This document shows, piece after piece, positions 2,370 through 61,794 of a stretch of 64,000 bases of DNA; position 1 is the first letter of the stretch; every line of letters begins with the position of its first letter. The stretch is taken from positions 213,132-277,131 of IMG/VR virus record IMGVR_UViG_3300001782_000005; one strand, given 5' to 3'. The translations under genes were made by a program, and so were the position numbers. The notes under the pieces were generated by a model that made no database searches, was not told the DNA's origin, and saw only the letters and a program-made list of their open reading frames with translations.

Positions 2370-3824
2370 ATGAAAGAACTCTTAATGGAATGCTACAGGA
2401 CTACGAAGAAGATTTCCGGTATTGATCCATCAAAACCTGGAAATCTGAAGGCCGTACTTGTAGATGATTCCGCGTTTGAGGCTTATGTTACAAGTCTTGC
2501 TGAGTCCATTGAGGATAAGAAAGACCGCAAGAACTTCCTACAATTGGCTGAGAACACCAGGATCAACCTCCTGGAAAATTCAATGTTTCAGATCAACCCA
2601 TATGAAACTTTGACTCTGCCAATTCTGCGCGTGTTTTATCCGAAGCTGATCGCTAAGGAACTTATCACTGTTTCGCCGATGGACAAACCGGAAACAATCA
2701 AGGCCTTCTTGACCGCCACCTTTTACAGACATGGTGACGCAACTGGGTACCCAGCACCCGCGCAGGCCACTGATATTTCGCAGGGTCCAGCTGTTGGTAC
2801 TCCTGTGGCAGCCACGATGCCTGTTCCAAGTAAGGCATACGATGTCCTGGCATTGATCGGTCTAACCAGCACAGAAGTTCACATTGAACGTGACTTCGAA
2901 ATCACCGCTGTTAGCGCGGATGGTACTGCTTGGACCGAAGTTTCAATCATCCCTGCCGTTGAGGGTCACTTCTCTGGCGGAGTAACAGTCACTGGTGTTG
3001 GTGATGACGTAATCTCCGGTAAAGTTGACTATCTCAATGGTACTGTTGACATTTCCAGTGCTACTGGAGTTGTCACCGTTATCAGGTTTACCTGCACTAC
3101 TTCACTTGAAGAGAATAGGGTAAATCCATACGTCAAGCTGAATGTTGACAAGGTACGCCTCTATGCTAGGGATCGCCAGATCTCTGCAAACTGGACGATT
3201 AATATGGAGCAGGACATGAGAGCTCTGTTTGATCTGTCCATGCAGGCTGAAATCGTCAATATCCTTGGTCAACAGATCGCCCTTGACATTGATAGGGAGA
3301 TTATCAATGCCTTGATTACGGGCAACACAAGGCTGAACCCAGCAACTCACCAGGATACCTTCAACCGTACTCCACCTGTAGGATATACTTGGGGTACTAA
3401 GTATTGGCATGAGAATATTATTCCAGTTCTGAATGTGCTGTCTGCCCAGATCTACACAGACACTAATATTGAAGCAGGTAACACCATTGCGGCCAACCCG
3501 CTTGATGTTGCTATTCTGGAAGATATTCAGACTTTCAATTACACTGGAACCTCAACTGTTGACGGTGACTTCGGCTATCGCTCTGCTACTGTTGCAGGTG
3601 GCAAGTGGCGAGTTCTAACCAGTGCCGTTGTTCCACAAGGTACCATGGTCATCGTTTACAAACCAGTGGAAGAACTGAAGGTTGTCTACTACTACTGTCC
3701 ATACGTTCCTGCCGTGTTGCATCCATACCCACTTGGATATACTCCATCTCTGACCATCTTGAGTCGTTATGCGACTTCGTTGGTCAGGCCACTGGGTATT
3801 GCTACACTGACAATTGGAGCGTAA
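2370..3824 (+). CDS. Major capsid protein, T4 gp23-like
   Basis: 484 aa, strong RBS AAGGAGGT, gp23-like motifs (RQISANWTINMEQD, IALDIDREII, YYYCPYVP, SRYA), followed by a terminator. Confidence 0.85.
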   Translation: MKELLMECYRTTKKISGIDPSKPGNLKAVLVDDSAFEAYVTSLAESIEDKKDRKNFLQLAENTRINLLENSMFQINPYETLTLPILRVFYPKLIAKELITVSPMDKPETIKAFLTATFYRHGDATGYPAPAQATDISQGPAVGTPVAATMPVPSKAYDVLALIGLTSTEVHIERDFEITAVSADGTAWTEVSIIPAVEGHFSGGVTVTGVGDDVISGKVDYLNGTVDISSATGVVTVIRFTCTTSLEENRVNPYVKLNVDKVRLYARDRQISANWTINMEQDMRALFDLSMQAEIVNILGQQIALDIDREIINALITGNTRLNPATHQDTFNRTPPVGYTWGTKYWHENIIPVLNVLSAQIYTDTNIEAGNTIAANPLDVAILEDIQTFNYTGTSTVDGDFGYRSATVAGGKWRVLTSAVVPQGTMVIVYKPVEELKVVYYYCPYVPAVLHPYPLGYTPSLTILSRYATSLVRPLGIATLTIGA

Positions 3825-29885: not shown

Positions 29886-30254
29886 ATGAAACTTGACAAG
29901 TATCTAAATCAGCTCAATGAGCAAAAGGTAAAGATTCCGGTTGAGCACCCTGGTATTCTTGAAGTTCCTGAGGGAAAGAATGTTGAAGATCTTCCAATGT
30001 CCCATTTTCAGGATCTAATTAAGAAAAAAGGATGGGTAGAAATTTCAAAAGCTCTTATTAACTTGAAAGTCTGGAATCGTGAAAGAGATAAACCCCTTTC
30101 TAGCTGGGCTGATGGCATGCAAGAGAAACTTGCAAAGTGGGTTGAGAGTCAGAGAGAAAAGGGAGAGATGAAAGAAGATGTTAAGCTTTCAACCTTCTCA
30201 TATGTTAACTTGCTTAAAGAGCAAGCTAAGAGACAATTAAAACGTCCTCGCTAA
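29886..30254 (+). CDS. Putative internal head protein
   Basis: N-terminal KYLNQLNE motif; late-promoter-like motif at 29851. Confidence 0.5.
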   Translation: MKLDKYLNQLNEQKVKIPVEHPGILEVPEGKNVEDLPMSHFQDLIKKKGWVEISKALINLKVWNRERDKPLSSWADGMQEKLAKWVESQREKGEMKEDVKLSTFSYVNLLKEQAKRQLKRPR

Positions 30255-38138: not shown

Positions 38139-38462
38139 ATGAAATTACTCAATGAATACTTAACTTATCTACAAGAAGCCGGTTTTAAAGCATACCCGAG
38201 AGGATGGACAAGGGACAGTGTTAGAAGATTTGGACTAACTCTATCAAAGAGAGTTAAGGGCGGACCCAAATCTCCTGGATTTTTCAAACTGTGTGTCGAA
38301 AAGATGAAAGGGAAGGTTAGCGATCCTAACGCGTTTTGTGCAGCTGTTAAAGACGAAGTTCATGCATCAACCTATTGGAGAGGTAAAGGAAAATCTCCGT
38401 CACAAGTCCAGAAATCAATCAAATCACATCCGAAAGTTCCGGAGAAACCGAAGGGAAAGTAA
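38139..38462 (+). CDS. Basic putative internal head protein
   Basis: MKLLNEYLTYLQE; late-promoter-like motif at 38093. Confidence 0.5.
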   Translation: MKLLNEYLTYLQEAGFKAYPRGWTRDSVRRFGLTLSKRVKGGPKSPGFFKLCVEKMKGKVSDPNAFCAAVKDEVHASTYWRGKGKSPSQVQKSIKSHPKVPEKPKGK

Positions 38463-46318: not shown

Positions 46319-46642
46319 ATGAATATGTCAGTAAAAGACTTCAGGTGGGAGTTTCAGGCATTAATCAAGAAGGTTGTCACTACAACTAAATATGACGTTG
46401 AAGTGGACTTGGGATTTAGGATAAAACATAAGATGAGGATTTCGTTGTTAGGTTGGTCTGAGATATCAAATGATGCAGTCGATTATGTTAGGGATAAGGT
46501 TGAGGGTAAGATTGTCATACTGAGACCAAGACATGCTGAAGTAGATGAGCAATATGTTGCAGATATAATACTCCTTGATGGTCGTGATCTAAAACTATTA
46601 ATTAGGGGTTGGGAGACTGGATATGATAAGGTTGGTACATAG
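46319..46642 (+). CDS. Thermonuclease (SNase)-like fold protein, probably degenerate
   Basis: VEVDLGF...RISLLG...YVADI pattern; canonical DGDT absent. Confidence 0.45.
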   Translation: MNMSVKDFRWEFQALIKKVVTTTKYDVEVDLGFRIKHKMRISLLGWSEISNDAVDYVRDKVEGKIVILRPRHAEVDEQYVADIILLDGRDLKLLIRGWETGYDKVGT

Positions 46643-47600
46643 GATTATATTGACTGAACTATGTAATCAATCGTGCCCCCATTGCTTCAATGCAGACTTC
46701 CGGACTAAGGGTGTTATGGATGCAGATATGTGGATCAAGTTTATACAGGATAACACCGACTATATACGAGGTCATGAACTAAAGGTAATGGGTGGGGAGC
46801 CTACTCTGCATCCTAGATTTCTTGAGGTCGTTGAGGAATCACTTAATCACTATAGGACTATCTCTATATTCACTAATGGTTCTACGATGCATAAATATGC
46901 TTCTAATAGAATGCTGATGAAGAATCACTTTAGGGGTAGAGTAGACTATAAGATAAATGGTTACGTATTTGATCCTAATAAGTTCGAGGAGTATAAGGAA
47001 TATGTACACCAGATAGGTCTACACTGTGTTGTTCCTCTAGGAGATTCTGATCTATTTGTTAATAAGGTACTTGAATTTACATATTTGCACCCACAGGTTA
47101 TGATATTGCTCTCTCCCGATACTCAGGTTAATATATTTGACGAGTCTATACTAAAGGAATATAGAGAAGTATGGATTAATGTTATTACAGACATTGTGCC
47201 TGAACTTAGAAGGATGAATATACCCTTTGGTTATGACCATGTATTTCCTATATGCTTCTATACTCAAGAGATGATAGATATTCTACATACCTTTGATATG
47301 GATAGTCTATATAGAGAGAAGATATGTTGTTGTGGGGATTTGAATTTAGGGTTGATTGACTATAACTTTGATCTATACTATTGTAATCAGACAAGGATTA
47401 AGTTAGGATCTATTCTCAAAGATGATAATACTTTTAAGACGATGGACGAAATATTCAATATGATTCAATGTGCATCATCTATGAAAACTGAGTCTATCCT
47501 TGAGTTATCGGATAAGTGTAGATCATGTCATGTTGTAGCATCTTGTAAGACTGGTTGTTTTTATAACTCTCTTGTGGGGGGGTTAATGTGTCAAAGATAA
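46623..47600 (+). CDS. Radical SAM/SPASM protein
   Basis: CNQSCPHC, MGGEPTLHP, IFTNG, C-terminal CRSC...CKTGC. Confidence 0.88.
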   Translation: MIRLVHRIILTELCNQSCPHCFNADFRTKGVMDADMWIKFIQDNTDYIRGHELKVMGGEPTLHPRFLEVVEESLNHYRTISIFTNGSTMHKYASNRMLMKNHFRGRVDYKINGYVFDPNKFEEYKEYVHQIGLHCVVPLGDSDLFVNKVLEFTYLHPQVMILLSPDTQVNIFDESILKEYREVWINVITDIVPELRRMNIPFGYDHVFPICFYTQEMIDILHTFDMDSLYREKICCCGDLNLGLIDYNFDLYYCNQTRIKLGSILKDDNTFKTMDEIFNMIQCASSMKTESILELSDKCRSCHVVASCKTGCFYNSLVGGLMCQR

Positions 47601-49195: not shown

Positions 49196-49860
49196 TATGA
49201 ATGGTGAGTTATTTGATAGTATAGAAAAACCGCCAGAGGGTTTATCAAAAGATGAATTAAAAAAGTGGATGAGAAAACACCGTGATTACCCGGAGATGAC
49301 TTTGGCTGAATATATGATCTTACCCACAAGAGAAGAGTACCATGAGATTATATACTCAGTACCTAGAAATCACAGAGAGGGAGACAAATATAGACTTGGT
49401 GAGGATCCTAAGGTTGGCGATCTTGCTGTGTATATGGAGTTTATGGATATTGATAATAAGTTGAGAAAATCAGAACTTGCACCTGCCATGGACCCTGTAG
49501 ATGTGCATGGTAATGTGCCGCTAACTACTATTACTTTACAACTAAGATTATGTTGGATTGTATAGGAGGATATTGTGAGTAGTAAGGTTGAGGAATATCT
49601 GCTATATCTTGAAGAAAGAGATCGTCTATTAGAACAGTATCGTGCCTGTCGTGAGTATTGTAATAAATTGCCTGGAGATAAACAACTAGATTGCTTCAAA
49701 AGATGTGAATCTAAAGTTGTAGATCAGATGGAAAAATTAAAAACTAATATAGTTGTATTTGGTCGAGATTACCATGCTGAAGTGGGAGCATAATTTGCTG
49801 ATAATGACTACTTGTAATGGGAACAAATTCAAAATATGACCTACGCGTTGGGAGGATAAT

Positions 49861-50466
49861 ATGAATGAGTTAGTAGAAAATTATCTACAGCTCCTACAAG
49901 AAGATGAAATAATAACTGAGGATATAAGGTCTTTCCTAGGCCGTCTTTCAGATAGAAAACTTAATAACTTTAGGTATTTTTTATCTAAAGCTTTTAAGAG
50001 AAAAGATAAGGAAGGTATTAAACGAATATTATCAACTGTTCCTGTTATTTCAGATGATAAATTGAAATATGTTGCTAAGAAATTCTCTCCAAATTTTAAC
50101 TTACCTTATAGACTGACCTTCTCATATATCAAACGTAAATATCCTAATGTTCCAGATACAATTGCTTCATATTTAGCTATTGCAGTTGGAGTAATGACTG
50201 GTCGTGAAGATAAACCTGAGGAGAAGACAAAAGACCTCTTATTGAAGTTTGATAAGAATTTGAAGAAAGCTCTTAGGGGTCAACTGAGGGAGCAAGATCC
50301 AGATGACCCTAGAACAGTCTTCTCTGGAGGTTTTGCATGGGGATTTTTTAGTTCAGCGCTTGTTACACTTCTTCTTGCATGGTTGTCTGCAGCAGGAACT
50401 CCTATGATAGCTGCTGGTATAGTTATATTAGTATTTGGTGCAATAATGGTAAAAGGATCAATTTAG
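49861..50466 (+). CDS. Putative virion/ejection protein with C-terminal TM segments
   Basis: N-terminal ENYLQLLQE motif; late-promoter-like motif at 49820; hydrophobic C-terminus. Confidence 0.5.
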   Translation: MNELVENYLQLLQEDEIITEDIRSFLGRLSDRKLNNFRYFLSKAFKRKDKEGIKRILSTVPVISDDKLKYVAKKFSPNFNLPYRLTFSYIKRKYPNVPDTIASYLAIAVGVMTGREDKPEEKTKDLLLKFDKNLKKALRGQLREQDPDDPRTVFSGGFAWGFFSSALVTLLLAWLSAAGTPMIAAGIVILVFGAIMVKGSI

Positions 50467-50475
50467 GAGGAAGTT

Positions 50476-50826
50476 ATGAGCAAGATGGTTGATGAATACC
50501 TTCAAGTTTTACAGGATGATAATATATCTGAAGCAGCAATTTCTCCAACTACTGCTCTTTTTATTGTTCCGACAGCAATTAGTTTAGCTGCTAAAGCATA
50601 TAAGGCCTTTATTGATAAGGCGGAGAAGACCTGTAGGGATTATACTGGCCTTGAAAAGACTAAGTGTCTAAAGAGATTTAGAGCTCAAGCAGTTAAAGCT
50701 AAAATAGCTACTCTGAATAAAGCTAAGGGAATGTGTGCTAAGGATAAGAACCCTGAGAAGTGCCGTGAGAAACTAGCGGGGCAGGTTTCTAAATTAAATG
50801 CTAAATTGAAGATGATTCAATTTTAG
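50476..50826 (+). CDS. Putative internal head protein
   Basis: DEYLQVLQD...SE N-terminus; four Cys. Confidence 0.5.
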   Translation: MSKMVDEYLQVLQDDNISEAAISPTTALFIVPTAISLAAKAYKAFIDKAEKTCRDYTGLEKTKCLKRFRAQAVKAKIATLNKAKGMCAKDKNPEKCREKLAGQVSKLNAKLKMIQF

Positions 50827-51080: not shown

Positions 51081-52193
51081 ATGAGTAACATAATGACGGC
51101 AAAAAATGCTCTAGACGAGAATAAGAGTAATCTCCTTAAAAAGGCTAATGTAGTAGCAGTGGGGGTTGGACTCAAAACTGTAGCTGGAGTAACTACAGAT
51201 GAAATATGTGTGATTGTGTCAGTTAAAGAGAAACTTCCAATTGAGAAACTCTCTGCTGCTGATGTGATTCCACAATCTTTTGGTGCTATAAAAACAGACG
51301 TTATCGAGACAGGAGAAATTGTTGCGTTAAAAGAACGAAGTGACTGGTGGAGGCCATATCCTGCTGGTGTCTCTGCTGGTCATAAAGATATAACCGCAGG
51401 AACCCTTGGTGCGTTTGTTAAGCGTGGAGATACTATACTCCTGTTAAGTAATAACCATGTTTTTGCAAACTCCAATGAAGCTAGTGTAGGCGATGCCATA
51501 TTTCAACCAGGCAGAGTTGATGGTGGTCGAGAGGAAGATACAATAGCTAATCTCTTAGATTATGTACCTATTTCTTTCTCTGGAGATACTGCACCTATAT
51601 GTCCTATAGCCAAGAAGGTCGAGAAGATTATCAATAGTATAGGGAGATTGCTAAAATCCAGTCATAAATTTTCCTTATCAAAGGCAGCTGAACCTGGAGA
51701 TCCTAATAAGGTAGATTGTGCTATAGCTACTCCTATTAATCCGGAGGATATGGAGCTGGTGATTCTTGAGATTGGTCATGTTAAGGGTGTAGCAGAAGCG
51801 ACTCTAGGGACAGCAGTTCAGAAGAGCGGGAGGACGACAGCATATACACAGGATACTGTGATTCAGATCCACGTGACTGCACAGGTTAATTACGGTGGAC
51901 CTATTGCTATATTTGAAGATCAGATAATGGCAGGCGCTATGAGTCAAGGTGGAGACTCTGGATCATTAGTATTAGATATGTTTAATAATGCTGTAGGTCT
52001 TCTATTTGCGGGTTCAGATAGTGTTACACTAATGAACCCTATTCGATATGTTCTGGATGGACTTGGAATTGAATTTGTGACTGAGTTAGACTCGAAGCAA
52101 CATGAGGTTGAAGTTATAGTAGATGAGAAAGAGGAGGACGAATCTGGGTTTAAAGTATATACTCCGATGCATCCATGGTATCCACTACCTTAG
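51081..52193 (+). CDS. Trypsin-like serine protease (Nal1-like)
   Basis: Triad SNNHV / VDCAIA / GGDSGS; GTLG and KSGRTT. Confidence 0.85.
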   Translation: MSNIMTAKNALDENKSNLLKKANVVAVGVGLKTVAGVTTDEICVIVSVKEKLPIEKLSAADVIPQSFGAIKTDVIETGEIVALKERSDWWRPYPAGVSAGHKDITAGTLGAFVKRGDTILLLSNNHVFANSNEASVGDAIFQPGRVDGGREEDTIANLLDYVPISFSGDTAPICPIAKKVEKIINSIGRLLKSSHKFSLSKAAEPGDPNKVDCAIATPINPEDMELVILEIGHVKGVAEATLGTAVQKSGRTTAYTQDTVIQIHVTAQVNYGGPIAIFEDQIMAGAMSQGGDSGSLVLDMFNNAVGLLFAGSDSVTLMNPIRYVLDGLGIEFVTELDSKQHEVEVIVDEKEEDESGFKVYTPMHPWYPLP

Positions 52194-52202
52194 GAGGATA
52201 AT

Positions 52203-52700
52203 ATGATGGAGAGTTATCTTAAATTCTTATCTGAAAAGGGAAAGTGCCCTCCCGGGATGAGATGGTGACCTGTCCGGAAAAAGTGTATCCGTGAGATGCA
52301 GTATGAACAAGCTATTTATAATGCTAATGACGGATTTGTGACTAATATTGAAAAAGATACAGTTGAAAATGATAATTTTCGAAAGGTTCTATATACTCCA
52401 AGGAATCTTCAATTAGTATTGATGAGTATTCCTCCTGGCGGAGAAGTTGGTGAGGAGATCCATCCTGCTGTTGATCAATTCTTTAGGATTGATGCTGGTG
52501 AAGGTAAAGTAATTTTGAATGGGAGAGAAATCCCAATTGAAGATGGTTTTGCTTTTATTGTTCCCGAAGGAACAAAGCATAATATTGTAAATACTTCGGC
52601 TAAAGATGACTTGAAACTCTATAGTATTTACTCTCCGCCTAATCACCCACCTGGGGTAATTCAGGCAACTAAAGCTGAGGCAGACGCCGAAGAAGAGTGA
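52203..52700 (+). CDS. Cupin protein with an N-terminal extension containing an in-frame TGA (candidate selenoprotein); track start is 52296
   Basis: Cupin motifs EIHP..DQFF...GEG and VPEGTKHN; RBS AGGAGG precedes 52203, which is in frame with 52296. Confidence 0.7.
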
Positions 52701-52707
52701 GGATAAT

Positions 52708-53136
52708 ATGAAAGATAAAAGACATCTCAGTGAACTTAAGCAGGTAGTATCTAGAAATATAGGTTATCTTAAGGAACAAGATGAGACCCATAAAGATATT
52801 AGGATGAGGATACTTGATTTCTTTAAAGAGAATCCAAGACCTACAGATAATGAAGTTCATGGCCTTGCAGATGAACTTGGTATAAATGAGCATGATTTTG
52901 AAGAGCACATTTATGCAATCCTTGGAGATATCTTTGCTTATGGAAGGGCCAATGAAAAAGGTTTTACTGAAGATAATGCTGATCCTGAGCAATTGAGGAT
53001 GGGAATAAAAGTTGAGATGGAGCATACTCGATGTCCTCAGATATCTAAAAGAATTGCATTAGATCATTTGGCTGAATTAGGGGACTATTATACTCGCTTA
53101 GCAAAGATGGAAGAAGAAGGTGGAGTAGAAGATTAA
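52708..53136 (+). CDS. Phage protein with a DUF5661-like C-terminus
   Basis: LRMGIKVEMEHT...IALDHLAE..DYYTRL. Confidence 0.6.
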   Translation: MKDKRHLSELKQVVSRNIGYLKEQDETHKDIRMRILDFFKENPRPTDNEVHGLADELGINEHDFEEHIYAILGDIFAYGRANEKGFTEDNADPEQLRMGIKVEMEHTRCPQISKRIALDHLAELGDYYTRLAKMEEEGGVED

Positions 53137-56089: not shown

Positions 56090-57007
56090 TTGTGGGGTTT
56101 GACTTCATTCTTTAATCCTATTGGATATAAGAACAAGGTTAAGAATTATAGGAAGTTTAGGTTATCTAGTCAAAAGCAAGGGTTGAAACTTTTATGTGTT
56201 GAGTTATCATTCGGAGGTAGGGAACCTGAGTTAACTAAAGATGATGCTGATATTTTGATCCAACTAAGATCTAATACGATATTATGGCAAAAAGAGCGTT
56301 TACTAAATATTGGTCTAAGAAATCTTCCGGATGATTGTACTAAGATTATCTGGATTGACTGTGACATTATTTTTCAGAATGATAATTGGGTTGAGGAAGT
56401 ATATAAATCTTTGGATAAGTATTTTGTTATTCAACCTTTTTCATTCGTTATTAGATTACCAAAGGATGGAATAATAAGTTCTGAGGATTTGCCTTTTGGA
56501 TTAGAAGAGGGTCAAAAAATTCATAGTATGGGTTACGGTATGCGAGATTCTGATAGGGAAAAGCTCTTTGATTTTTTTATACATGGTCATTCTGGGTTTG
56601 CCTGGGCTGCCAGAAGAGAGATTTTTAATAAGCACGGTTTTTATGATAGGTTAATTCTTGGTTCTGGTGACTTGATGATGGCCCATACTTTCTACGGTCA
56701 TAAATTTAATTATATTAGGAGTTTGTCTTCTGAACCAATGCAATTAGATCAAGATGTGTGGTTTGAGGAAATTTATAATATAGTTAAAAGCAATGTTTAT
56801 TTTGTTCCTGGTCTAATTTTTCATCTATGGCATGGAGATAAAATTAATAAGCTTCATGATGAGAGATTTGAGATTCTTGTCTCGGAGAATTTTGACCCCA
56901 GAAAAGACATTAAACTAGATAGTAATGATTGCTGGACTTGGGCAACTAACAAACCAAAATTGCACCAATGGTGTGAGAAATATTTTAGTTTTAGAAAAGA
57001 AGAGTAA
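56090..57007 (+). CDS. Glycosyltransferase-like (GT-A) protein
   Basis: LWQKERLLN, WIDCD (DxD), GFAWA, HLWHG. Confidence 0.6.
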   Translation: MWGLTSFFNPIGYKNKVKNYRKFRLSSQKQGLKLLCVELSFGGREPELTKDDADILIQLRSNTILWQKERLLNIGLRNLPDDCTKIIWIDCDIIFQNDNWVEEVYKSLDKYFVIQPFSFVIRLPKDGIISSEDLPFGLEEGQKIHSMGYGMRDSDREKLFDFFIHGHSGFAWAARREIFNKHGFYDRLILGSGDLMMAHTFYGHKFNYIRSLSSEPMQLDQDVWFEEIYNIVKSNVYFVPGLIFHLWHGDKINKLHDERFEILVSENFDPRKDIKLDSNDCWTWATNKPKLHQWCEKYFSFRKEE

Positions 57008-57930
57008 TGAAATCTATTCGATTAGAAGCTACAACAATTTGTCAACTAAAGTGTCCCTCTTGTCCGACATCTTCAGGAGATGTGAGTAGGTATCTTGGAT
57101 CTGGACATCTTCGAATTGAGGATTTTAAAAATCTCGTTGATAGTAACTCTTGGATTTCGAATATTGAACTTTCTAATTGGGGGGAGATTTTTCTCAACCC
57201 GGACTTGATACCTATTTTTTACCACGCTTATAAGAGAGATGTAGGTTTGAGTGCTGATAATGGTGTAAATCTAAATACTGTTAGTCGAGATATTCTTGAA
57301 GCAATGATTGTATATAAATTTCGAAGTATGAAATGTTCTATTGATGGAGCTACACCAGGGACTTATAGTATCTATCGACGCAGAGGAGATTTTAATGCTG
57401 TGATAGAGAATATTCAAACTATCAATTATTTTAAGAAGCAGTACAATTCTAGATATCCACAGTTAACTTGGCAATTTATAATGTTTGATCATAATATACA
57501 CGAACTTGAAAGTGCAGGGGAAATGGCTAAAAAGTTAGGTATGAGTTTTTTCCCTAAACTTTCTTGGGAAAATTTTTATGTTAAAGATTCTATAGCTAAA
57601 CCTGAGAGAGCTCCTACACGAGAAGAATTTAAGAACAGATTTGGTAAGCATTATATTCGAAACCTCTGTACTCAACTATGGACAAAACCTCAAATTAATT
57701 ATGATGGAAAAGTCCTTGGTTGCTGTGTTCAGTATTGGGGAGATTTTGGTAATGCTTTTAAAGAAGGTCTCAGAGAGAGTTTGAATAATGAGAAGATTGA
57801 ATATGCTCGTCAGATGCTCTTGGGAGAAGAAGATAGCCGTCAAGACATTGCTTGTAGTTCCTGTGAGGTTTACCTGGAGATGAAAGAATCTCAGAATTGG
57901 ATAAAGATGAGTGAGGTCCATGAAATTTAA
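57007..57930 (+). CDS. Radical SAM/twitch protein
   Basis: CQLKCPSC, NWGE, SIDG, C-terminal C...GCC...CSSC. Confidence 0.85.
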   Translation: MKSIRLEATTICQLKCPSCPTSSGDVSRYLGSGHLRIEDFKNLVDSNSWISNIELSNWGEIFLNPDLIPIFYHAYKRDVGLSADNGVNLNTVSRDILEAMIVYKFRSMKCSIDGATPGTYSIYRRRGDFNAVIENIQTINYFKKQYNSRYPQLTWQFIMFDHNIHELESAGEMAKKLGMSFFPKLSWENFYVKDSIAKPERAPTREEFKNRFGKHYIRNLCTQLWTKPQINYDGKVLGCCVQYWGDFGNAFKEGLRESLNNEKIEYARQMLLGEEDSRQDIACSSCEVYLEMKESQNWIKMSEVHEI

Positions 57931-58950: not shown

Positions 58951-60381
58951 ATGGGTGAAGTTATTGATATGGAACAGAAGGAAGATGGAATCGTTGAGAT
59001 GAAGGAAAAGCAACCTGAATCCGGTTTTACAATTCAGGATAAAAGGAAACTTGCTCCGCACCCTCAACCTGAACCCCCTAAACAGTTTAAGCAAAAGAGT
59101 GTAGGGAAGGGTAAGAAAGAGAAGATTTGTATTGTCACAAACTTCATGGAGTTTAATCCTCGCTACTCATTAACTGGAATTGTTAAAGACCACATTCAAG
59201 CACTCACGAAAAATGGGCACAAAGTTGGCCTTATTGTCAACGAAAAATATAGGGATCAGGATTTTAAGGGTGTTGAGATGCTCAAAGTCCTTCCTTTTGC
59301 CCATTTAAAAGATTACCACAATATAAATGACCTAAAAGAAGAACACAAAGTTACGATTGATAAGACAGAACAGGTACTTAAAAAAGTGTTTACTAATACA
59401 GATGGAGATGGAGATGTTTATGAATTAGCTTTCTGCCATGATATAAATTTCCAAGGTTGGTTCCTACCTTACAAATTAGGTCTCGAAAAAGCATCTTTTC
59501 AACTTCCCCATGTTAGATGGCTTCATTGGGTTCATAGTATTCCAAGTGGTATGCGCGAATATTGGAAAATTCCAAGCAAGAAGCATAAGATCATATTTCC
59601 TAATGAAACTGATAGACTACGAGTTGCTGAACAATTTAGAGGGGAGTTGGATGATGTTCGAATTGTTCACCATATAAAGGATATGAGAACCTTTATGGAT
59701 TTTGATCCAATTGCTTGTAGGATGATAGATCAATATGACTTAATGAATGCTTCTATTATTCAAGTATATCCGGCTTCAGTTGATCGTCTTCATGCTAAAG
59801 GTGTTGATTATGTTATAAGAATCTTCTCTAACCTAAAGAAGCAGGGAGAAAGTGTTAGACTTATTATTCTAAACCAGTGGTGTAATGTTGACAAACATCG
59901 TCAAACCGTTGAGCAATATTGCCAGACTGCTAGGGGTCTTGGTTTAGAACCAGATAAAGAATTAATATTTAGTTCACGTTTTGAAACTCCCCGCTTTGAA
60001 ACAGGTGTTGATGCTAATATTGTGAAAGATTTATTTTCTCTTTCGAACCTCTTTATTTTTCCAACGAGAGAAGAAGCATTTGGACTTGTTCTTCCTGAGG
60101 CTGCTTTAAGTGGTGGAGTGCTATTAGTATTGAATAGATCTCTACAAATGCAGTCAGAGGTTGCAGGTTTAAATGCCCTGTACTTTGATTTTGGAAGTTT
60201 TACCCATAATTTTTCAATACCGGGTGATAAATATTACGAAGATATAGCAACTATTATTAGAGGTAGAATGAGACAAGAATACTCACTTATGGCAAAGACA
60301 TTTATGAGACGGATGTATAATATGGATAGAATTTATAAGGAGGAGATGTTGCCCATTATTGGGGAGAGCAGAAATTGGTAG
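58951..60381 (+). CDS. GT4-like glycosyltransferase
   Basis: KGVD...LFIFPTREEAFGLVLPEA. Confidence 0.8.
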   Translation: MGEVIDMEQKEDGIVEMKEKQPESGFTIQDKRKLAPHPQPEPPKQFKQKSVGKGKKEKICIVTNFMEFNPRYSLTGIVKDHIQALTKNGHKVGLIVNEKYRDQDFKGVEMLKVLPFAHLKDYHNINDLKEEHKVTIDKTEQVLKKVFTNTDGDGDVYELAFCHDINFQGWFLPYKLGLEKASFQLPHVRWLHWVHSIPSGMREYWKIPSKKHKIIFPNETDRLRVAEQFRGELDDVRIVHHIKDMRTFMDFDPIACRMIDQYDLMNASIIQVYPASVDRLHAKGVDYVIRIFSNLKKQGESVRLIILNQWCNVDKHRQTVEQYCQTARGLGLEPDKELIFSSRFETPRFETGVDANIVKDLFSLSNLFIFPTREEAFGLVLPEAALSGGVLLVLNRSLQMQSEVAGLNALYFDFGSFTHNFSIPGDKYYEDIATIIRGRMRQEYSLMAKTFMRRMYNMDRIYKEEMLPIIGESRNW

Positions 60382-61206: not shown

Positions 61207-61794
61207 ATGCGGCAAAATTTAACCGATTTTATATCAGAAGAGAATATTTTTGAAACTATTAAGGAAAGGTTTGGTAGCAAAATTAATAATGAGGCTACCG
61301 CAATTGACAAAATTGAGATTAGTCGGATACTAAAAGACTTCATTGAGATAGTAAAACCAAAGAAGATTCTGGAGATTGGAACTTATCAAGGATTATCTGC
61401 AGCCTACTTAAGTTTATTTGCGGAAGTAATAACTGTAGATTTGCATTTTCAACCCATTTCGAAAGAGATATGGGATTATCTAGGGGTTTCTGAAAGAATT
61501 AGATTTTTCGTTTCTCCAGAGCTAGATCGAATAAAGAAATTTGTTGAGAATCTCGATTTTGATTGTGCTTTTATTGATGGTGAACATACATATAAAGCAG
61601 TATCTCATGATTATGAACTTGTTAGGAAATGTGGGAATGTGATTTTTCACGACTATGCATGGCATTTAATAAAGGAGAATAAGGAGGATAGTTTTCCAGG
61701 TGTAACAAAATTTGTGAATTCTTTACCTGAAGATGAAGTTTTGAAATCTCCGCCTTTTGCTTTATGGAGGGATGAAAATGCCAGAAGAGAATAA
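61207..61794 (+). CDS. Class I SAM methyltransferase (Methyltransf_24-like)
   Basis: ILEIGTYQGLS, FIDGEHTY, IFHDY. Confidence 0.85.
   Translation: MRQNLTDFISEENIFETIKERFGSKINNEATAIDKIEISRILKDFIEIVKPKKILEIGTYQGLSAAYLSLFAEVITVDLHFQPISKEIWDYLGVSERIRFFVSPELDRIKKFVENLDFDCAFIDGEHTYKAVSHDYELVRKCGNVIFHDYAWHLIKENKEDSFPGVTKFVNSLPEDEVLKSPPFALWRDENARRE

Follow-up and report, generated by a model that had tools for sequence, protein, structure and literature searches.

Two in-frame UGA codons in a phage genome, one in a cupin gene and one in a dCMP deaminase gene, are evidently translated, most likely as selenocysteine, with the caveat that selenium cannot be demonstrated in silico. The cupin gene lies within the window, by which we mean the whole 64,000-nucleotide stretch that was analyzed (positions 213,132 to 277,131 of IMG/VR record IMGVR_UViG_3300001782_000005). 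Translation there runs on in frame past UGA 52266, and the locus is likely a single 165-codon frame (52203-52700) rather than a 21-codon leader followed by a 134-codon cupin. Host-dependent selenocysteine insertion at this codon is the likely reading, the identity of the inserted residue being inferred in the absence of any selenium data, and its main rival is leaky readthrough. In the deaminase, alignment shows that UGA stands in place of a near-invariant Cys.

Organization of the cupin locus

The frame that opens at ATG 52203 is split by the TGA at 52266-52268, and the same frame continues beyond it into a Cupin_2 gene (Table 1). The original prediction, made from the sequence alone, had placed AGGAGG before ATG 52203 and an open frame through TGA 52266 into the cupin, and these coordinates held. 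Its further claims were likewise borne out: that the annotated start at 52296 lacks a good ribosome-binding site (there is no spaced Shine-Dalgarno, with CGTGAG immediately 5' of the ATG), that the N-terminus carries a YLxxLxE tag (similar tags, of the (D/E)YLxxLQ(E/D) type, are found at the N-termini of at least seven other proteins of this genome, 72-201 aa long), that the TGA sits in a C-P-P-G-x-x-W-[U]-x5-C context (a module found widely), and that TGA is elsewhere an ordinary stop, making the recoding site-specific. Lineages B (L002) and C (L004, L013) of the cupin have AGGAGG or AGGAG at the equivalent site before this start, and there too a trypsin-like protease gene adjoins the cupin.

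As called from ATG 52296, a possible reinitiation start, the cupin is 134 aa long and ends at TGA 52698-52700; it matches the Cupin_2 profile (PF07883) at 54.7 bits against a gathering cut-off of 27.2, and the family match is therefore met. No BLAST match to the cupin region was found among GenBank phages, and a search of the N-terminal 46-60 residues against Pfam with E-values up to 10 returned only noise (FF, CBM_14, DUF4810). A "2-cysteine adaptor domain" may share the spacing of the module.

Table 1 Features of the cupin locus and of the second recoded gene (window coordinates unless prefixed by G000, which denotes this phage genome)
Feature	Position	Strand	Description
Upstream neighbor, trypsin-like protease	51081..52193	+	phrog_20754, E = 9.7e-71
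Shine-Dalgarno AGGAGG	52193..52198	+	4 nt upstream of ATG 52203
First 21 codons, MMESYLKFLSEKGKCPPGMRW	52203..52265	+	Tag MMESYLKFLSE, then first half of the module, C15-P-P-G-M-R-W21
Module C-P-P-G-M-R-W-[TGA]-P-V-R-K-K-C (codons 15-28)	52245..52286	+	From pattern scans with the eighth codon free
In-frame TGA, candidate selenocysteine codon (codon 22)	52266..52268	+	Next base is C
Nine codons PVRKKCIRE, from TGA to annotated ATG	52269..52295	+	Coding-type evolution
Bacterial-SECIS-type hairpin TGTATC-CGTGA-GATGCA	52284..52300	+	Arms 52284-52289 and 52295-52300; loop CGTGA 52290-52294
Annotated cupin start ATG, Met32 of the long protein	52296..52298	+	In 3' arm of the hairpin; kept in lineages A, B, and C
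Cupin_2 domain, at residues 73-143 of the full read-through product (165 residues)	52419..52631	+	PF07883, E = 8.3e-15; phrog_13536
True gene end, TGA followed in frame by GGA TAA	52698..52706	+	Ordinary stop, with back-up stop two codons on
Downstream neighbor, DUF5661 protein	52708..53136	+	Pfam PF18905
dCMP deaminase	G000:192441-192909		Outside the window; in-frame TGA at G000:192516-18, residue 26

Conservation and selection around TGA 52266

The TGA occupies the same codon in lineages A, B, and C of the cupin (64-73% identity between the cupins), and codons beside it vary at third positions across these lineages (CCT/CCG/CCC, GTC/ATC/ATT, TGT/TGC). It is present in Logan contigs from two runs of different studies, with 0 differences over 1001 bases, as well as in IMG/VR contigs from other samples, and lineages B and C, which keep it, were assembled from further samples. 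One of the two Logan runs may be the window's own source, and these data consist of contigs only, without within-population variation. TGT, TGC, or TGG at this site, which would have counted against the prediction, was not seen in these contigs. A sequencing or assembly artefact as the source of the TGA is all but excluded.

Selection on the flanking codons points the same way. The nine codons between the TGA and the annotated start have a pN/pS of 0.10-0.15 in all three lineage pairs, below the 0.22-0.32 of the cupin body, and the first 21 codons reach 0.27-0.43 between lineages. The nine-codon spacer is therefore translated in this frame.

A second in-frame TGA in the dCMP deaminase

The deaminase TGA of the same genome aligns with a Cys in solved dCMP deaminases (2hvv, 1vq2, 4p9c), and Cys is found at this position in 15 of 15 full-length aligned homologues. 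A 90%-identical relative keeps the TGA. Across the 129 codons that follow it, where purifying selection is strong, pS is 0.56 and pN 0.033 (pN/pS 0.058), compared with a pN/pS of 0.45 for the codons that precede it, and the sole start codon in the post-TGA frame lies about 18 codons before the end. The hairpin downstream of the TGA persists through four synonymous substitutions. In another relative (P0128), the deaminase, 87% identical, was called from an internal Met.

A recurrent 14-residue module

Pattern scans in which the eighth codon was left free recovered the module C-P-P-G-x-x-W-[?]-P-x-x-K-K-C from numerous contigs of phage or metagenome origin. Five unrelated protein contexts, the cupin and four other proteins, have TGA as the eighth codon, and P-x-x-K/x-K-C is kept after the TGA in each of them, many synonymous differences notwithstanding; three of the five have no downstream protein, merely 9-35 further codons. 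In orthologues of the DUF5661 protein from other phages (L044, L053, P0250), the module is C-terminal and contains the TGA, with 16 post-TGA codons common to two lineages and differing synonymously. The third of these proteins (P0250), as called, stops exactly at the module, ending CPPGQKY. DUF5661 orthologues with the module and a sense codon at the TGA site were searched for and none was found, and no paralogue of the module was detected within this phage genome.

The expectation that Cys would stand at the TGA position was not clearly met for the module. Alignment of homologues showed UGA kept within the lineages and no Trp copy: among the 16 other module copies, the eighth residue is mostly Asp or Asn, with Cys (L024), Ser, and His once each. 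A scan of IMG/VR for TGG, TGT, or TGC at this position returned only chance matches, with no Cys or Trp copy. Such a spectrum, mostly Asp/Asn and Cys once, is unusual for a selenocysteine site.

SECIS-type hairpins downstream of the recoded codons

The hairpin first proposed after TGA 52266, CGGA pairing with TCCG, exists as an inverted repeat (52275-78/52288-91) of 4 bp only, is absent in lineage C, and is not conserved. The more general claim that a SECIS-like hairpin follows the TGA held for a different, conserved hairpin at 52284-52300. This has a 6-bp stem and a loop starting 21 nt past the TGA, is the minimum free energy hairpin in lineages A, B, and C, and keeps its pairing at both variable stem positions (U-G/C-G and G-C/G-U). 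[quoted passage not shown]

This published geometry was met by all 10 sequences from six independent TGA contexts, against a background in this genome of 7.8% among 1200 Cys/Trp codons and 9.0% among the 89 ordinary TGA stops, and against 1 of 16 module copies without TGA (Fisher p = 9e-5). The hairpins had been inspected before the published criteria were applied. Among the ordinary TGA stops, eight pass the test, and the extensions behind them are short and unremarkable.

Predicted stabilities are less distinctive. The window copy is weak (-5.6 kcal/mol), lineage B reaches -6.5 and lineage C -11.7 kcal/mol, the latter with a second hairpin included, and three of the six TGA contexts attain -7.5 kcal/mol, a cut-off that is a search heuristic of the SECIS consensus model. 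Compared with shuffled sequences, the 60-70 nt after the TGA folded no better overall (z-scores of +0.7 to -2.4), nor did they exceed module copies without TGA; stability alone is therefore no evidence, and only the geometry and loop test discriminates. An Rfam search of 52150-52420 recovered no SECIS and no other family. It remains possible that the 52284-52300 hairpin, which contains the conserved AUG, serves reinitiation instead.

Alternative explanations

The alternative that survives best, and one we consider unlikely, is programmed leaky termination, in which a near-cognate tRNA, that for Trp or perhaps for Cys or Arg, would decode UGA-C at low frequency, giving a minor full-length and a major truncated product without selenium. 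Several observations favor it. All recoded sites are UGA-C, the weakest termination context in E. coli. Of the genes ending in TGA, 44% have a second in-frame stop within 3 codons, compared with 18-23% of those ending in TAA or TAG (Fisher p = 7.5e-4 for a within-5-codon cut; Mann-Whitney p = 5e-6), and early back-up stops of this kind are what a leaky UGA in this host would lead one to expect. The phage also encodes adjacent tRNA-Cys(GCA) and tRNA-Trp(CCA) genes with ordinary anticodons, and the module position tolerates D, N, S, H, and C. However, Trp at the near-invariant Cys of a dCMP deaminase is unlikely to be tolerated, and leaky termination leaves unexplained the SECIS-geometry hairpins in 6 of 6 contexts (background about 8%). 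Nor is there a TGG or TGY variant of the module among phage contigs, and the phage tRNA-Trp carries C11:G24 where the Hirsh suppressor of UGA, also a tRNA-Trp, has U11:A24.

Very unlikely, in our view, is that the TGA is a real stop ending a 21-residue leader, with the cupin translated from ATG 52296 by termination-reinitiation and the hairpin gating that start. This ATG, 27 nt past the stop, is kept in three lineages within the 3' arm of the conserved hairpin, gene callers start the cupin there, and reinitiation may well occur in addition to recoding. As a sole explanation, however, it is countered by purifying selection on the amino acids of the TGA-ATG spacer, by the retention of P-x-x-K-K-C in contexts that include three with no downstream protein to couple, by the N-terminal tag, which elsewhere belongs to full-size proteins, and by the deaminase, which offers no start codon after its TGA until near its end.

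A non-standard genetic code, whether of the whole phage or of its late genes, with TGA read as Trp (code 4) or Gly (code 25), is all but excluded. In its favor are the in-frame TGAs in two genes and a related contig (G003) that carries a tmRNA as well as an amber-suppressor-like tRNA with a CTA anticodon, so that recoding exists in this phage neighborhood. Against it, a greedy gene set under code 11 covers 94.5% of the 277-kb genome, TGA ends 89 of its 379 genes, the longest ORFs (up to 2782 aa) are free of TGA, and large ORFs are not lengthened when TGA is read as sense. Trp encoded by TGG alone makes up a normal 1.5% of residues. ARAGORN detected only Pro, His, Cys, and Trp tRNAs in this genome, without a UCA anticodon, and no UCA anticodon in three related records (G001-G003). 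Comparison with G001, G002, and G006, limited to the comparable parts of the genome, revealed no conserved in-frame TGA, TAA, or TAG beyond the two reported here; other apparent in-frame stops were rejected as ATGA overlaps, adjacent same-frame genes, or non-coding frames.

Finally, a nonsense mutation or assembly error, leaving a dead N-terminal remnant and a deaminase pseudogene, would need only one change from TGT or TGC, and either case alone resembles a broken gene, but this too is all but excluded by the same TGA in independent assemblies and samples, by purifying selection flanking both TGAs at a synonymous divergence of about 0.5-0.8, and by the recurrence of TGA at one module position in five proteins.

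Proposed mechanism and host dependence

The core of the original prediction, a candidate selenoprotein, is supported by conservation, selection, the recurrent module TGA, the deaminase TGA, and the hairpins. In the selenocysteine model, ribosomes would initiate at ATG 52203 downstream of the strong Shine-Dalgarno, and at UGA 52266 host SelB with Sec-tRNA(Sec) would compete with RF2, the SelB complex being held by the small hairpin whose CGUGA loop lies 21 nt after the UGA. Selenocysteine would be inserted, and the predicted product would consist of the YLxxLxE N-terminal tag, a 14-residue Cys-x6-Sec-x5-Cys loop, and the Cupin_2 domain. Ribosomes that terminate at the UGA may possibly restart at AUG 52296, which would yield a tagless cupin; this is an inference, as is any chemical role of the Sec residue. 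The same device would operate in the phage dCMP deaminase, with UGA for the near-invariant Cys. In related sediment phages, the 14-residue module with its UGA is found on four or more further proteins.

Supply of selA, selB, selC, and selD by the host is inferred. A check for this machinery in the phage and three relatives turned up neither selB nor selD, and no bona fide tRNA-Sec: sub-threshold tRNA-Sec matches were ordinary tRNAs plus one odd tRNA-like element, which was rejected at 29.8 bits against a 47-bit threshold and for want of a UCA anticodon. Since the host is unknown, the availability of Sec machinery is assumed. The source samples are marine sediment, and marine-sediment, Desulfobacterota-type settings are known to be rich in Sec-using bacteria. 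The closest cellular homologues of the deaminase come from Desulfobacterota-type MAGs (60-65% identity); a Desulfobacterota-like host is possible, these homologies being merely a hint.

A bolder reading, towards which the evidence in our judgment tips by a small margin, is that large phages of one clade, found in anoxic marine or estuarine sediments, encode selenoproteins of their own and make them through host SelB and tRNA-Sec. These would comprise a deaminase with Sec for Cys and, as part of the same joint reading, a portable Cys-x6-Sec-x5-Cys module that, together with its SECIS-type hairpin, would have been joined to the N- or C-terminal ends of five or more phage proteins unrelated to one another. 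In the window, the module would link the N-terminal tag with the cupin. Were this so, the output of full-length protein would hinge on the host's selenium status.

Implications

Bacterial selenocysteine insertion is well understood, and the literature that we searched contained no phage gene for which selenocysteine had been demonstrated or argued, only predicted tRNA-Sec genes in huge phages. A 2026 review of the prokaryotic selenoproteome (PMC13188914) lists neither a module-bearing cupin nor a dCMP deaminase, and the terms "deaminase", "phage", and "viral" have 0 occurrences in it. If confirmed, our reading would add phages to the owners of selenoproteins and two new families to the selenoproteome, namely dCMP deaminase and a cupin bearing a small Cys-Sec-Cys module. 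It would also reveal a very small portable Sec module with a SECIS-type hairpin after each copy, and would make the synthesis of phage proteins dependent on the host's Sec machinery and supply of selenium, narrowing host range to Sec-using bacteria. Gene callers report the cupin as 134 aa instead of 165, leave the deaminase uncalled or shortened, and cut DUF5661 proteins at the module; because TGA-containing genes are split or truncated in this way, phage annotation pipelines systematically miss them.

Comparison with known recoding systems

Huge phages have predicted tRNA-Sec genes, which are predictions only and come with no target gene (PMC10747093); they resemble our case in suggesting that large phages may handle selenocysteine, whereas the phage described here has target genes and no convincing tRNA-Sec. 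Stop-codon-recoded phages, for which code 15 is covered in PMC9523058, likewise read a stop codon as sense in some genes. TAG is known to be read as Gln in crAss-like and Lak phages and TGA as Trp in some jumbo phages, the reassignment there affecting numerous codons in a large number of late genes and being accompanied by a suppressor tRNA of the phage. Here, in contrast, there are two sites only, TGA is a frequent true stop, and no suppressor tRNA is present. In phage Q-beta, the coat protein is extended to A1 by low-frequency UGA read-through with near-cognate tRNA-Trp. That case is similar in that a phage UGA extends a protein and in that terminated and read-through products may both matter, but unlike this phage it involves neither a SECIS-type hairpin nor the replacement of a conserved Cys.

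Viral selenoprotein genes are known from eukaryotes in the glutathione peroxidases of molluscum contagiosum virus and fowlpox virus, where a viral UGA is likewise decoded as Sec by host machinery, as would be the case here. These genes use a 3'-UTR SECIS and represent a captured host selenoprotein family, whereas the element of this phage is of the bacterial type and sits within the coding sequence, and the two protein families concerned are not known to include selenoproteins. Bacterial genes with a coding-region SECIS (e.g., E. coli fdhF; bSECISearch model, PMC13188914) differ in that this phage carries no Sec machinery of its own, in that homologues of its module mostly have Asp or Asn, and in that its hairpins are short, some of them weaker than the usual energy cut-off. 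With these bacterial genes it nevertheless shares an in-frame UGA where UGA otherwise stops, the UGA-C context, a hairpin at a fixed short distance with a small (N)G[G/U] loop, and, at the deaminase site, homologues with Cys.

A conserved in-frame TGA ahead of the phage cupin

The original prediction, of a candidate phage selenoprotein, described an AGGAGG and an ATG whose frame runs through a TGA into the cupin, with TGA an ordinary stop elsewhere. The description of the sequence held throughout (see table), and the ATG at the cupin start lacks a properly spaced Shine-Dalgarno sequence. The claim of site specificity also held, from the code and stop counts of the source record, of which bases 213132-277131 form the window, a 277,131-bp phage genome with direct terminal repeats (IMG/VR virus record; 36.7% G+C) from marine sediment metagenomes, with no similar sequence among GenBank phages. 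Read with code 11, it has TGA-free ORFs of up to 2782 aa, its large ORFs are not lengthened when TGA is read as sense, and a greedy non-overlapping gene set covering 94.5% of the genome ends in 184 TAA, 106 TAG, and 89 TGA. None of its four tRNAs (Pro-TGG, His-GTG, Cys-GCA, and Trp-CCA) has a UCA anticodon. The standard code fits this genome, which makes the in-frame TGA a question of this particular site. Separately, a second in-frame stop follows within three codons in 44% of TGA-ending genes vs. 23% for TAA and 18% for TAG (Mann-Whitney p = 5e-6), with weaker trends in the same direction in three related phage contigs (G001–G003). These early back-up stops could reflect leaky UGA termination in the host, with gene-overlap geometry not excluded as a confounder.

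A search of proteins for the read-through sequence returned the 134-aa protein called in the window itself and, at 73% and 64% identity, two close relatives. Both relatives lie on contigs with a strong Shine-Dalgarno sequence, an ATG, a short N-terminal stretch to C-P-P-G-x-R-W, the TGA, P-[V/I]-[R/K]-K-K-C-I-R-E-M, and the cupin. Across the three lineages (A, the window; B, stretches L002 and L003; C, stretch L004 and the 113-kb IMG/VR contig behind L013/L028), codons flanking the TGA vary, mostly synonymously (CCT/CCG/CCC, GTC/ATC/ATT, CGG/AAG, AAG/AAA, TGT/TGC). Nei-Gojobori counting between lineage pairs yielded pN/pS of 0.10–0.15 for the nine codons from TGA to ATG, 0.22–0.32 for the cupin body, and 0.27–0.43 for the pre-TGA segment. 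The post-TGA codons evolve as coding sequence and are therefore translated in this frame. An assembly artefact was ruled out by independent contigs and samples: two public runs, each of a different study, have contigs in which the stretch shows no difference (one perhaps the window's source), and nearly identical IMG/VR contigs of other samples carry the same TGA.

The motif (D/E)YLxxLQ(E/D) of the N-terminal tag opens at least seven other proteins of 72–201 aa in the full genome. The tag marks the beginning of real proteins rather than of a 21-residue peptide. The broader pattern M-x(2-6)-(D/E/S)-Y-L-x-x-L-(Q/N/R/S)-(E/D) occurs on at least eight proteins in all, several clustering beside a trypsin-like protease gene. 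Prohead proteases cut short N-terminal targeting or propeptide sequences from phage head proteins, which the tag resembles, by likeness only. In lineages B and C, the cupin C-terminus is fused to the first part of a DUF5661-type neighbour (FF(K/R)xNPxPSD...HIY) that is a separate gene in the window, and in lineage B the neighbour's N-terminal peptide DKxHLxELK stands ahead of the module; such small terminal pieces have evidently been shuffled among these phages. The protease-cupin cluster is flanked by PHROG matches to two radical SAM proteins, a glycosyltransferase, and a methyltransferase; whether these enzymes might modify the nearby small Cys/Sec-containing proteins is raised only as a question.

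A second in-frame TGA in a dCMP deaminase gene

A genome-wide listing of all single TGAs between two long open stretches, with no other gene covering them, included one within a dCMP deaminase gene. Both catalytic motifs of this enzyme, HAE and PCxxC, are preserved, and the first start codon among the 129 post-TGA codons lies only about 18 codons before the end. Opposite the TGA, the solved enzymes of Streptococcus mutans, phage T4, and cyanophage S-TIM5 have Cys (Asp in the human enzyme), as do 15/15 full-length homologues (RSTCLRR) and a further five phage homologues of greater distance. The TGA persists in near-identical strains and in L093, a 90%-identical relative found in a different sample; against L093, the post-TGA part shows pS 0.56 and pN 0.033 (ratio 0.058). 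As inferred from sequence alone, the deaminase cannot work unless this TGA is decoded, with cysteine the residue replaced; TGA at an otherwise-Cys position is what classically marks a selenocysteine codon, the reading we consider probable. Apart from the cupin and deaminase cases, no conserved in-frame stop (TGA, TAA, or TAG) emerged from comparison with the related contigs G001, G002, and G006.

Gene callers miss or truncate this gene. In an 87%-identical relative (P0128; ENA ERZ23498361, 13,443-bp contig), the called deaminase begins at an internal Met and has just 115 aa. The true-start position is occupied by a 57-codon ORF, with spacing 151 nt longer and differing frames, suggesting an insertion or other interruption near the TGA site.

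The 14-residue module in other proteins

We scanned metagenome, genome, and viral contigs with a degenerate DNA pattern (C-P-P-G-x-x-W-NNN-P-x-x-[KR]-[KR]-C, eighth codon free) and two TGA-fixed relaxations, setting aside GC-rich chance matches. Many phage proteins contain the module, a small, widespread unit with two cysteines that is unnamed and has no Pfam match. In 16 independent non-TGA copies, position eight is usually Asp or Asn; Ser, His, and Cys each occur in a single copy (for Cys, L024, CPPGYFWCPVDKKC). In five protein contexts unrelated to one another, TGA stands at the eighth codon, and P-x-x-K/x-K-C follows in 5/5, through different synonymous codons. The DUF5661 pair shares 16 post-TGA codons, differing by GTG/GTA, GGT/GGA, and AGA/CGA; a third DUF5661 database protein terminates exactly at CPPGQKY. 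Scanning IMG/VR for TGT, TGC, or TGG at this codon returned chance matches only, so TGA is the sole TGN codon at the site in phage copies.

Asp/Asn modules also occur twice, tandem-like (CPPGMEWDPKAKKC ... CPP(D/N)xLFDYxRRKC), inside large conserved phage proteins of about 770–990 aa, and three in a row in a Proteobacteria MAG (L039). The contig carrying the fifth TGA context (G003, IMGVR_UViG_3300037308_000440) encodes 19 tRNAs and a tmRNA; one tRNA has a CTA anticodon, of amber-suppressor type and named 'Pyl' by ARAGORN, and this phage could conceivably read TAG as sense.

SECIS-type hairpins follow the in-frame TGA codons

The 4-bp CGGA/TCCG hairpin of the original prediction is present in the window, missing in lineage C, and failed as a conserved element; the proposed Cys-like position of the cupin holds Cys in only one module copy elsewhere. 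The fold conserved in lineages A, B, and C is TG[T/C]ATC-CGTGA-GATG[C/T]A, in which two variable stem positions still pair and twelve bases (ATCCGTGAGATG) are invariant. Stability z-scores against shuffles overlap with those of non-TGA module copies. Since plain folding stability is not convincing evidence, we applied the published bacterial SECIS geometry (PMC13188914): apical loop of 3–9 nt, upper stem of 4–16 bp, a G among the first two loop nucleotides (mostly G then G or U), and UGA-to-loop distance of 16–37 nt.

With one script for all sets, requiring this geometry and a G[G/U] loop, 10/10 sequences of six independent TGA contexts passed, compared to 7.8% of 1200 Cys/Trp codons inside genes of the same genome, 9.0% of 89 ordinary TGA stops, 6.6% of 290 TAA/TAG stops, and 1/16 non-TGA module copies (6/6 contexts vs. 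1/16, Fisher p = 9e-5). Loops were CGUGA, GGU, CGGGUA/CGGGAC, GUU, GUU, and AGUUA, with start positions from +25 to +33, and the deaminase helix (+22 to +43) survives four synonymous substitutions. The consensus energy cut-off of −7.5 kcal/mol was met in 3/6 contexts (window copy only −5.6), and the hairpins had already been seen before these criteria were applied.

Coordinates of features (window positions unless a genome or stretch is named; G000, full 277-kb genome)
Feature	Location	Strand	Basis or remark
Shine-Dalgarno AGGAGG	52193-52198	+	sequence inspection
Start ATG, then 21 codons MMESYLKFLSEKGKCPPGMRW	52203	+	
In-frame TGA	52266-52268	+	
Nine in-frame codons PVRKKCIRE	TGA 52266-52268 to ATG 52296	+	
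SECIS-type hairpin	52284-52300 (loop 52290-52294)	+	
Cupin_2 ORF, 134 codons	start ATG 52296	+	Pfam PF07883, E = 8e-15
Cupin terminator TGA	52698-52700	+	then GGA TAA in frame
DUF5661-type neighbour	52708-53136		
Cupin-DUF5661 fusions	L002:376-1095, L004:96-785		lineages B, C
Trypsin-like protease	51081-52193		
Tagged proteins, window	49575-49793, 49861-50466, 50476-50826, 38139-38462, 29886-30254, 52203		
Tagged proteins, outside window	G000:135779-136309, 138081-138575		
Radical SAM, glycosyltransferase, methyltransferase genes	46623-47600, 57007-57930; also 58951-60381, 61207-61794		PHROG
dCMP deaminase	G000:C1:192441-192909 = L086:1941-2409	+	~20.6 kb upstream of window
Deaminase in-frame TGA	G000:192516-192518	+	codon 26
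tRNA-like element	G000:C1:80243-80349 = L072:11241-11349	-	1.4 kb from tRNA-Cys/Trp pair
TGA context 1, cupin N-terminus	window		
TGA context 2, C-terminus of 99-codon protein	L020, L042, L045, L048		
TGA context 3, C-terminus of DUF5661 proteins	L027 = L044, and L053		
TGA context 4, C-terminus of 120-codon protein	L029		
TGA context 5, N-terminus of 101-codon protein	L051		
Paired Asp/Asn modules, large phage proteins	L043, L046, L049, L050, L021, L022		
CTA-anticodon tRNA and tmRNA	G003:14299-14376 and 2980-3340		

Selenocysteine machinery and host

Neither the phage nor three relatives encode selB, selD, or tRNA-Sec above threshold; the host would have to supply the machinery. The best cellular deaminase homologues (60–65% identity) come from MAGs of Dissulfurimicrobium, Desulfofervidaceae, Desulfatiglandaceae, Geobacteraceae, and similar, which, with the sediment origin, is compatible with Sec-using hosts without proving them, the host being unidentified. 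One odd tRNA-like element has the stems, variable arm, and discriminator of bacterial tRNA-Sec architecture (8-bp acceptor stem, 5-bp T stem, loop UUCGACU, long variable arm, G discriminator), with abnormal D and anticodon regions and no UCA anticodon; it scored 29.8 bits against RF01852 (threshold 47) and received no ARAGORN call.

Proposed mechanism and alternatives

Ordinary bacterial Sec insertion, exploited by the phage, is the most likely account, with Sec and host machinery both inferred. Translation would start at the tagged ATG, and SelB-dependent decoding of the UGA, guided by the hairpin, would produce a 165-residue protein in which a Cys-x6-Sec-x5-Cys loop joins the tag to the cupin. 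Terminated ribosomes may restart at the conserved AUG within the hairpin.

The main rival, near-cognate read-through of a leaky UGA-C, draws support from the early second stops after ordinary TGA stops and from the adjoining phage tRNA-Cys and tRNA-Trp genes. We nevertheless consider it unlikely, as it would replace the deaminase's invariant Cys, leaves the SECIS-type hairpins unexplained, and is at odds with the absence of TGG variants at the module position in the IMG/VR scan. Pure termination-reinitiation, with TGA a true stop and the cupin started separately, is still less plausible: coding constraint persists past the stop, three module contexts have nothing downstream to couple to, and the deaminase contradicts it. 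Together, the stop counts and the conservation of the TGA practically eliminate an altered genetic code and a broken gene.

Comparison with known systems

No phage selenoprotein gene was described in the literature searched, and a 2026 review of prokaryotic selenoproteomes (PMC13188914) mentions neither phages nor deaminases. Unlike this phage, stop-codon-recoded phages combine many recoded sites with a suppressor tRNA, and eukaryotic-virus selenoproteins rely on a 3′-UTR SECIS. The phage cupin instead works like a bacterial selenoprotein gene. Two features are not clear-cut, namely Cys in homologues (found for the deaminase, with module copies mostly Asp/Asn) and the energy heuristic (−5.6 against −7.5 kcal/mol). 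The other testable features are present. With the two decisive ones, a Sec-competent host and a selenium-containing product, both inferred, the window gene is likely a selenoprotein gene of the bacterial type.
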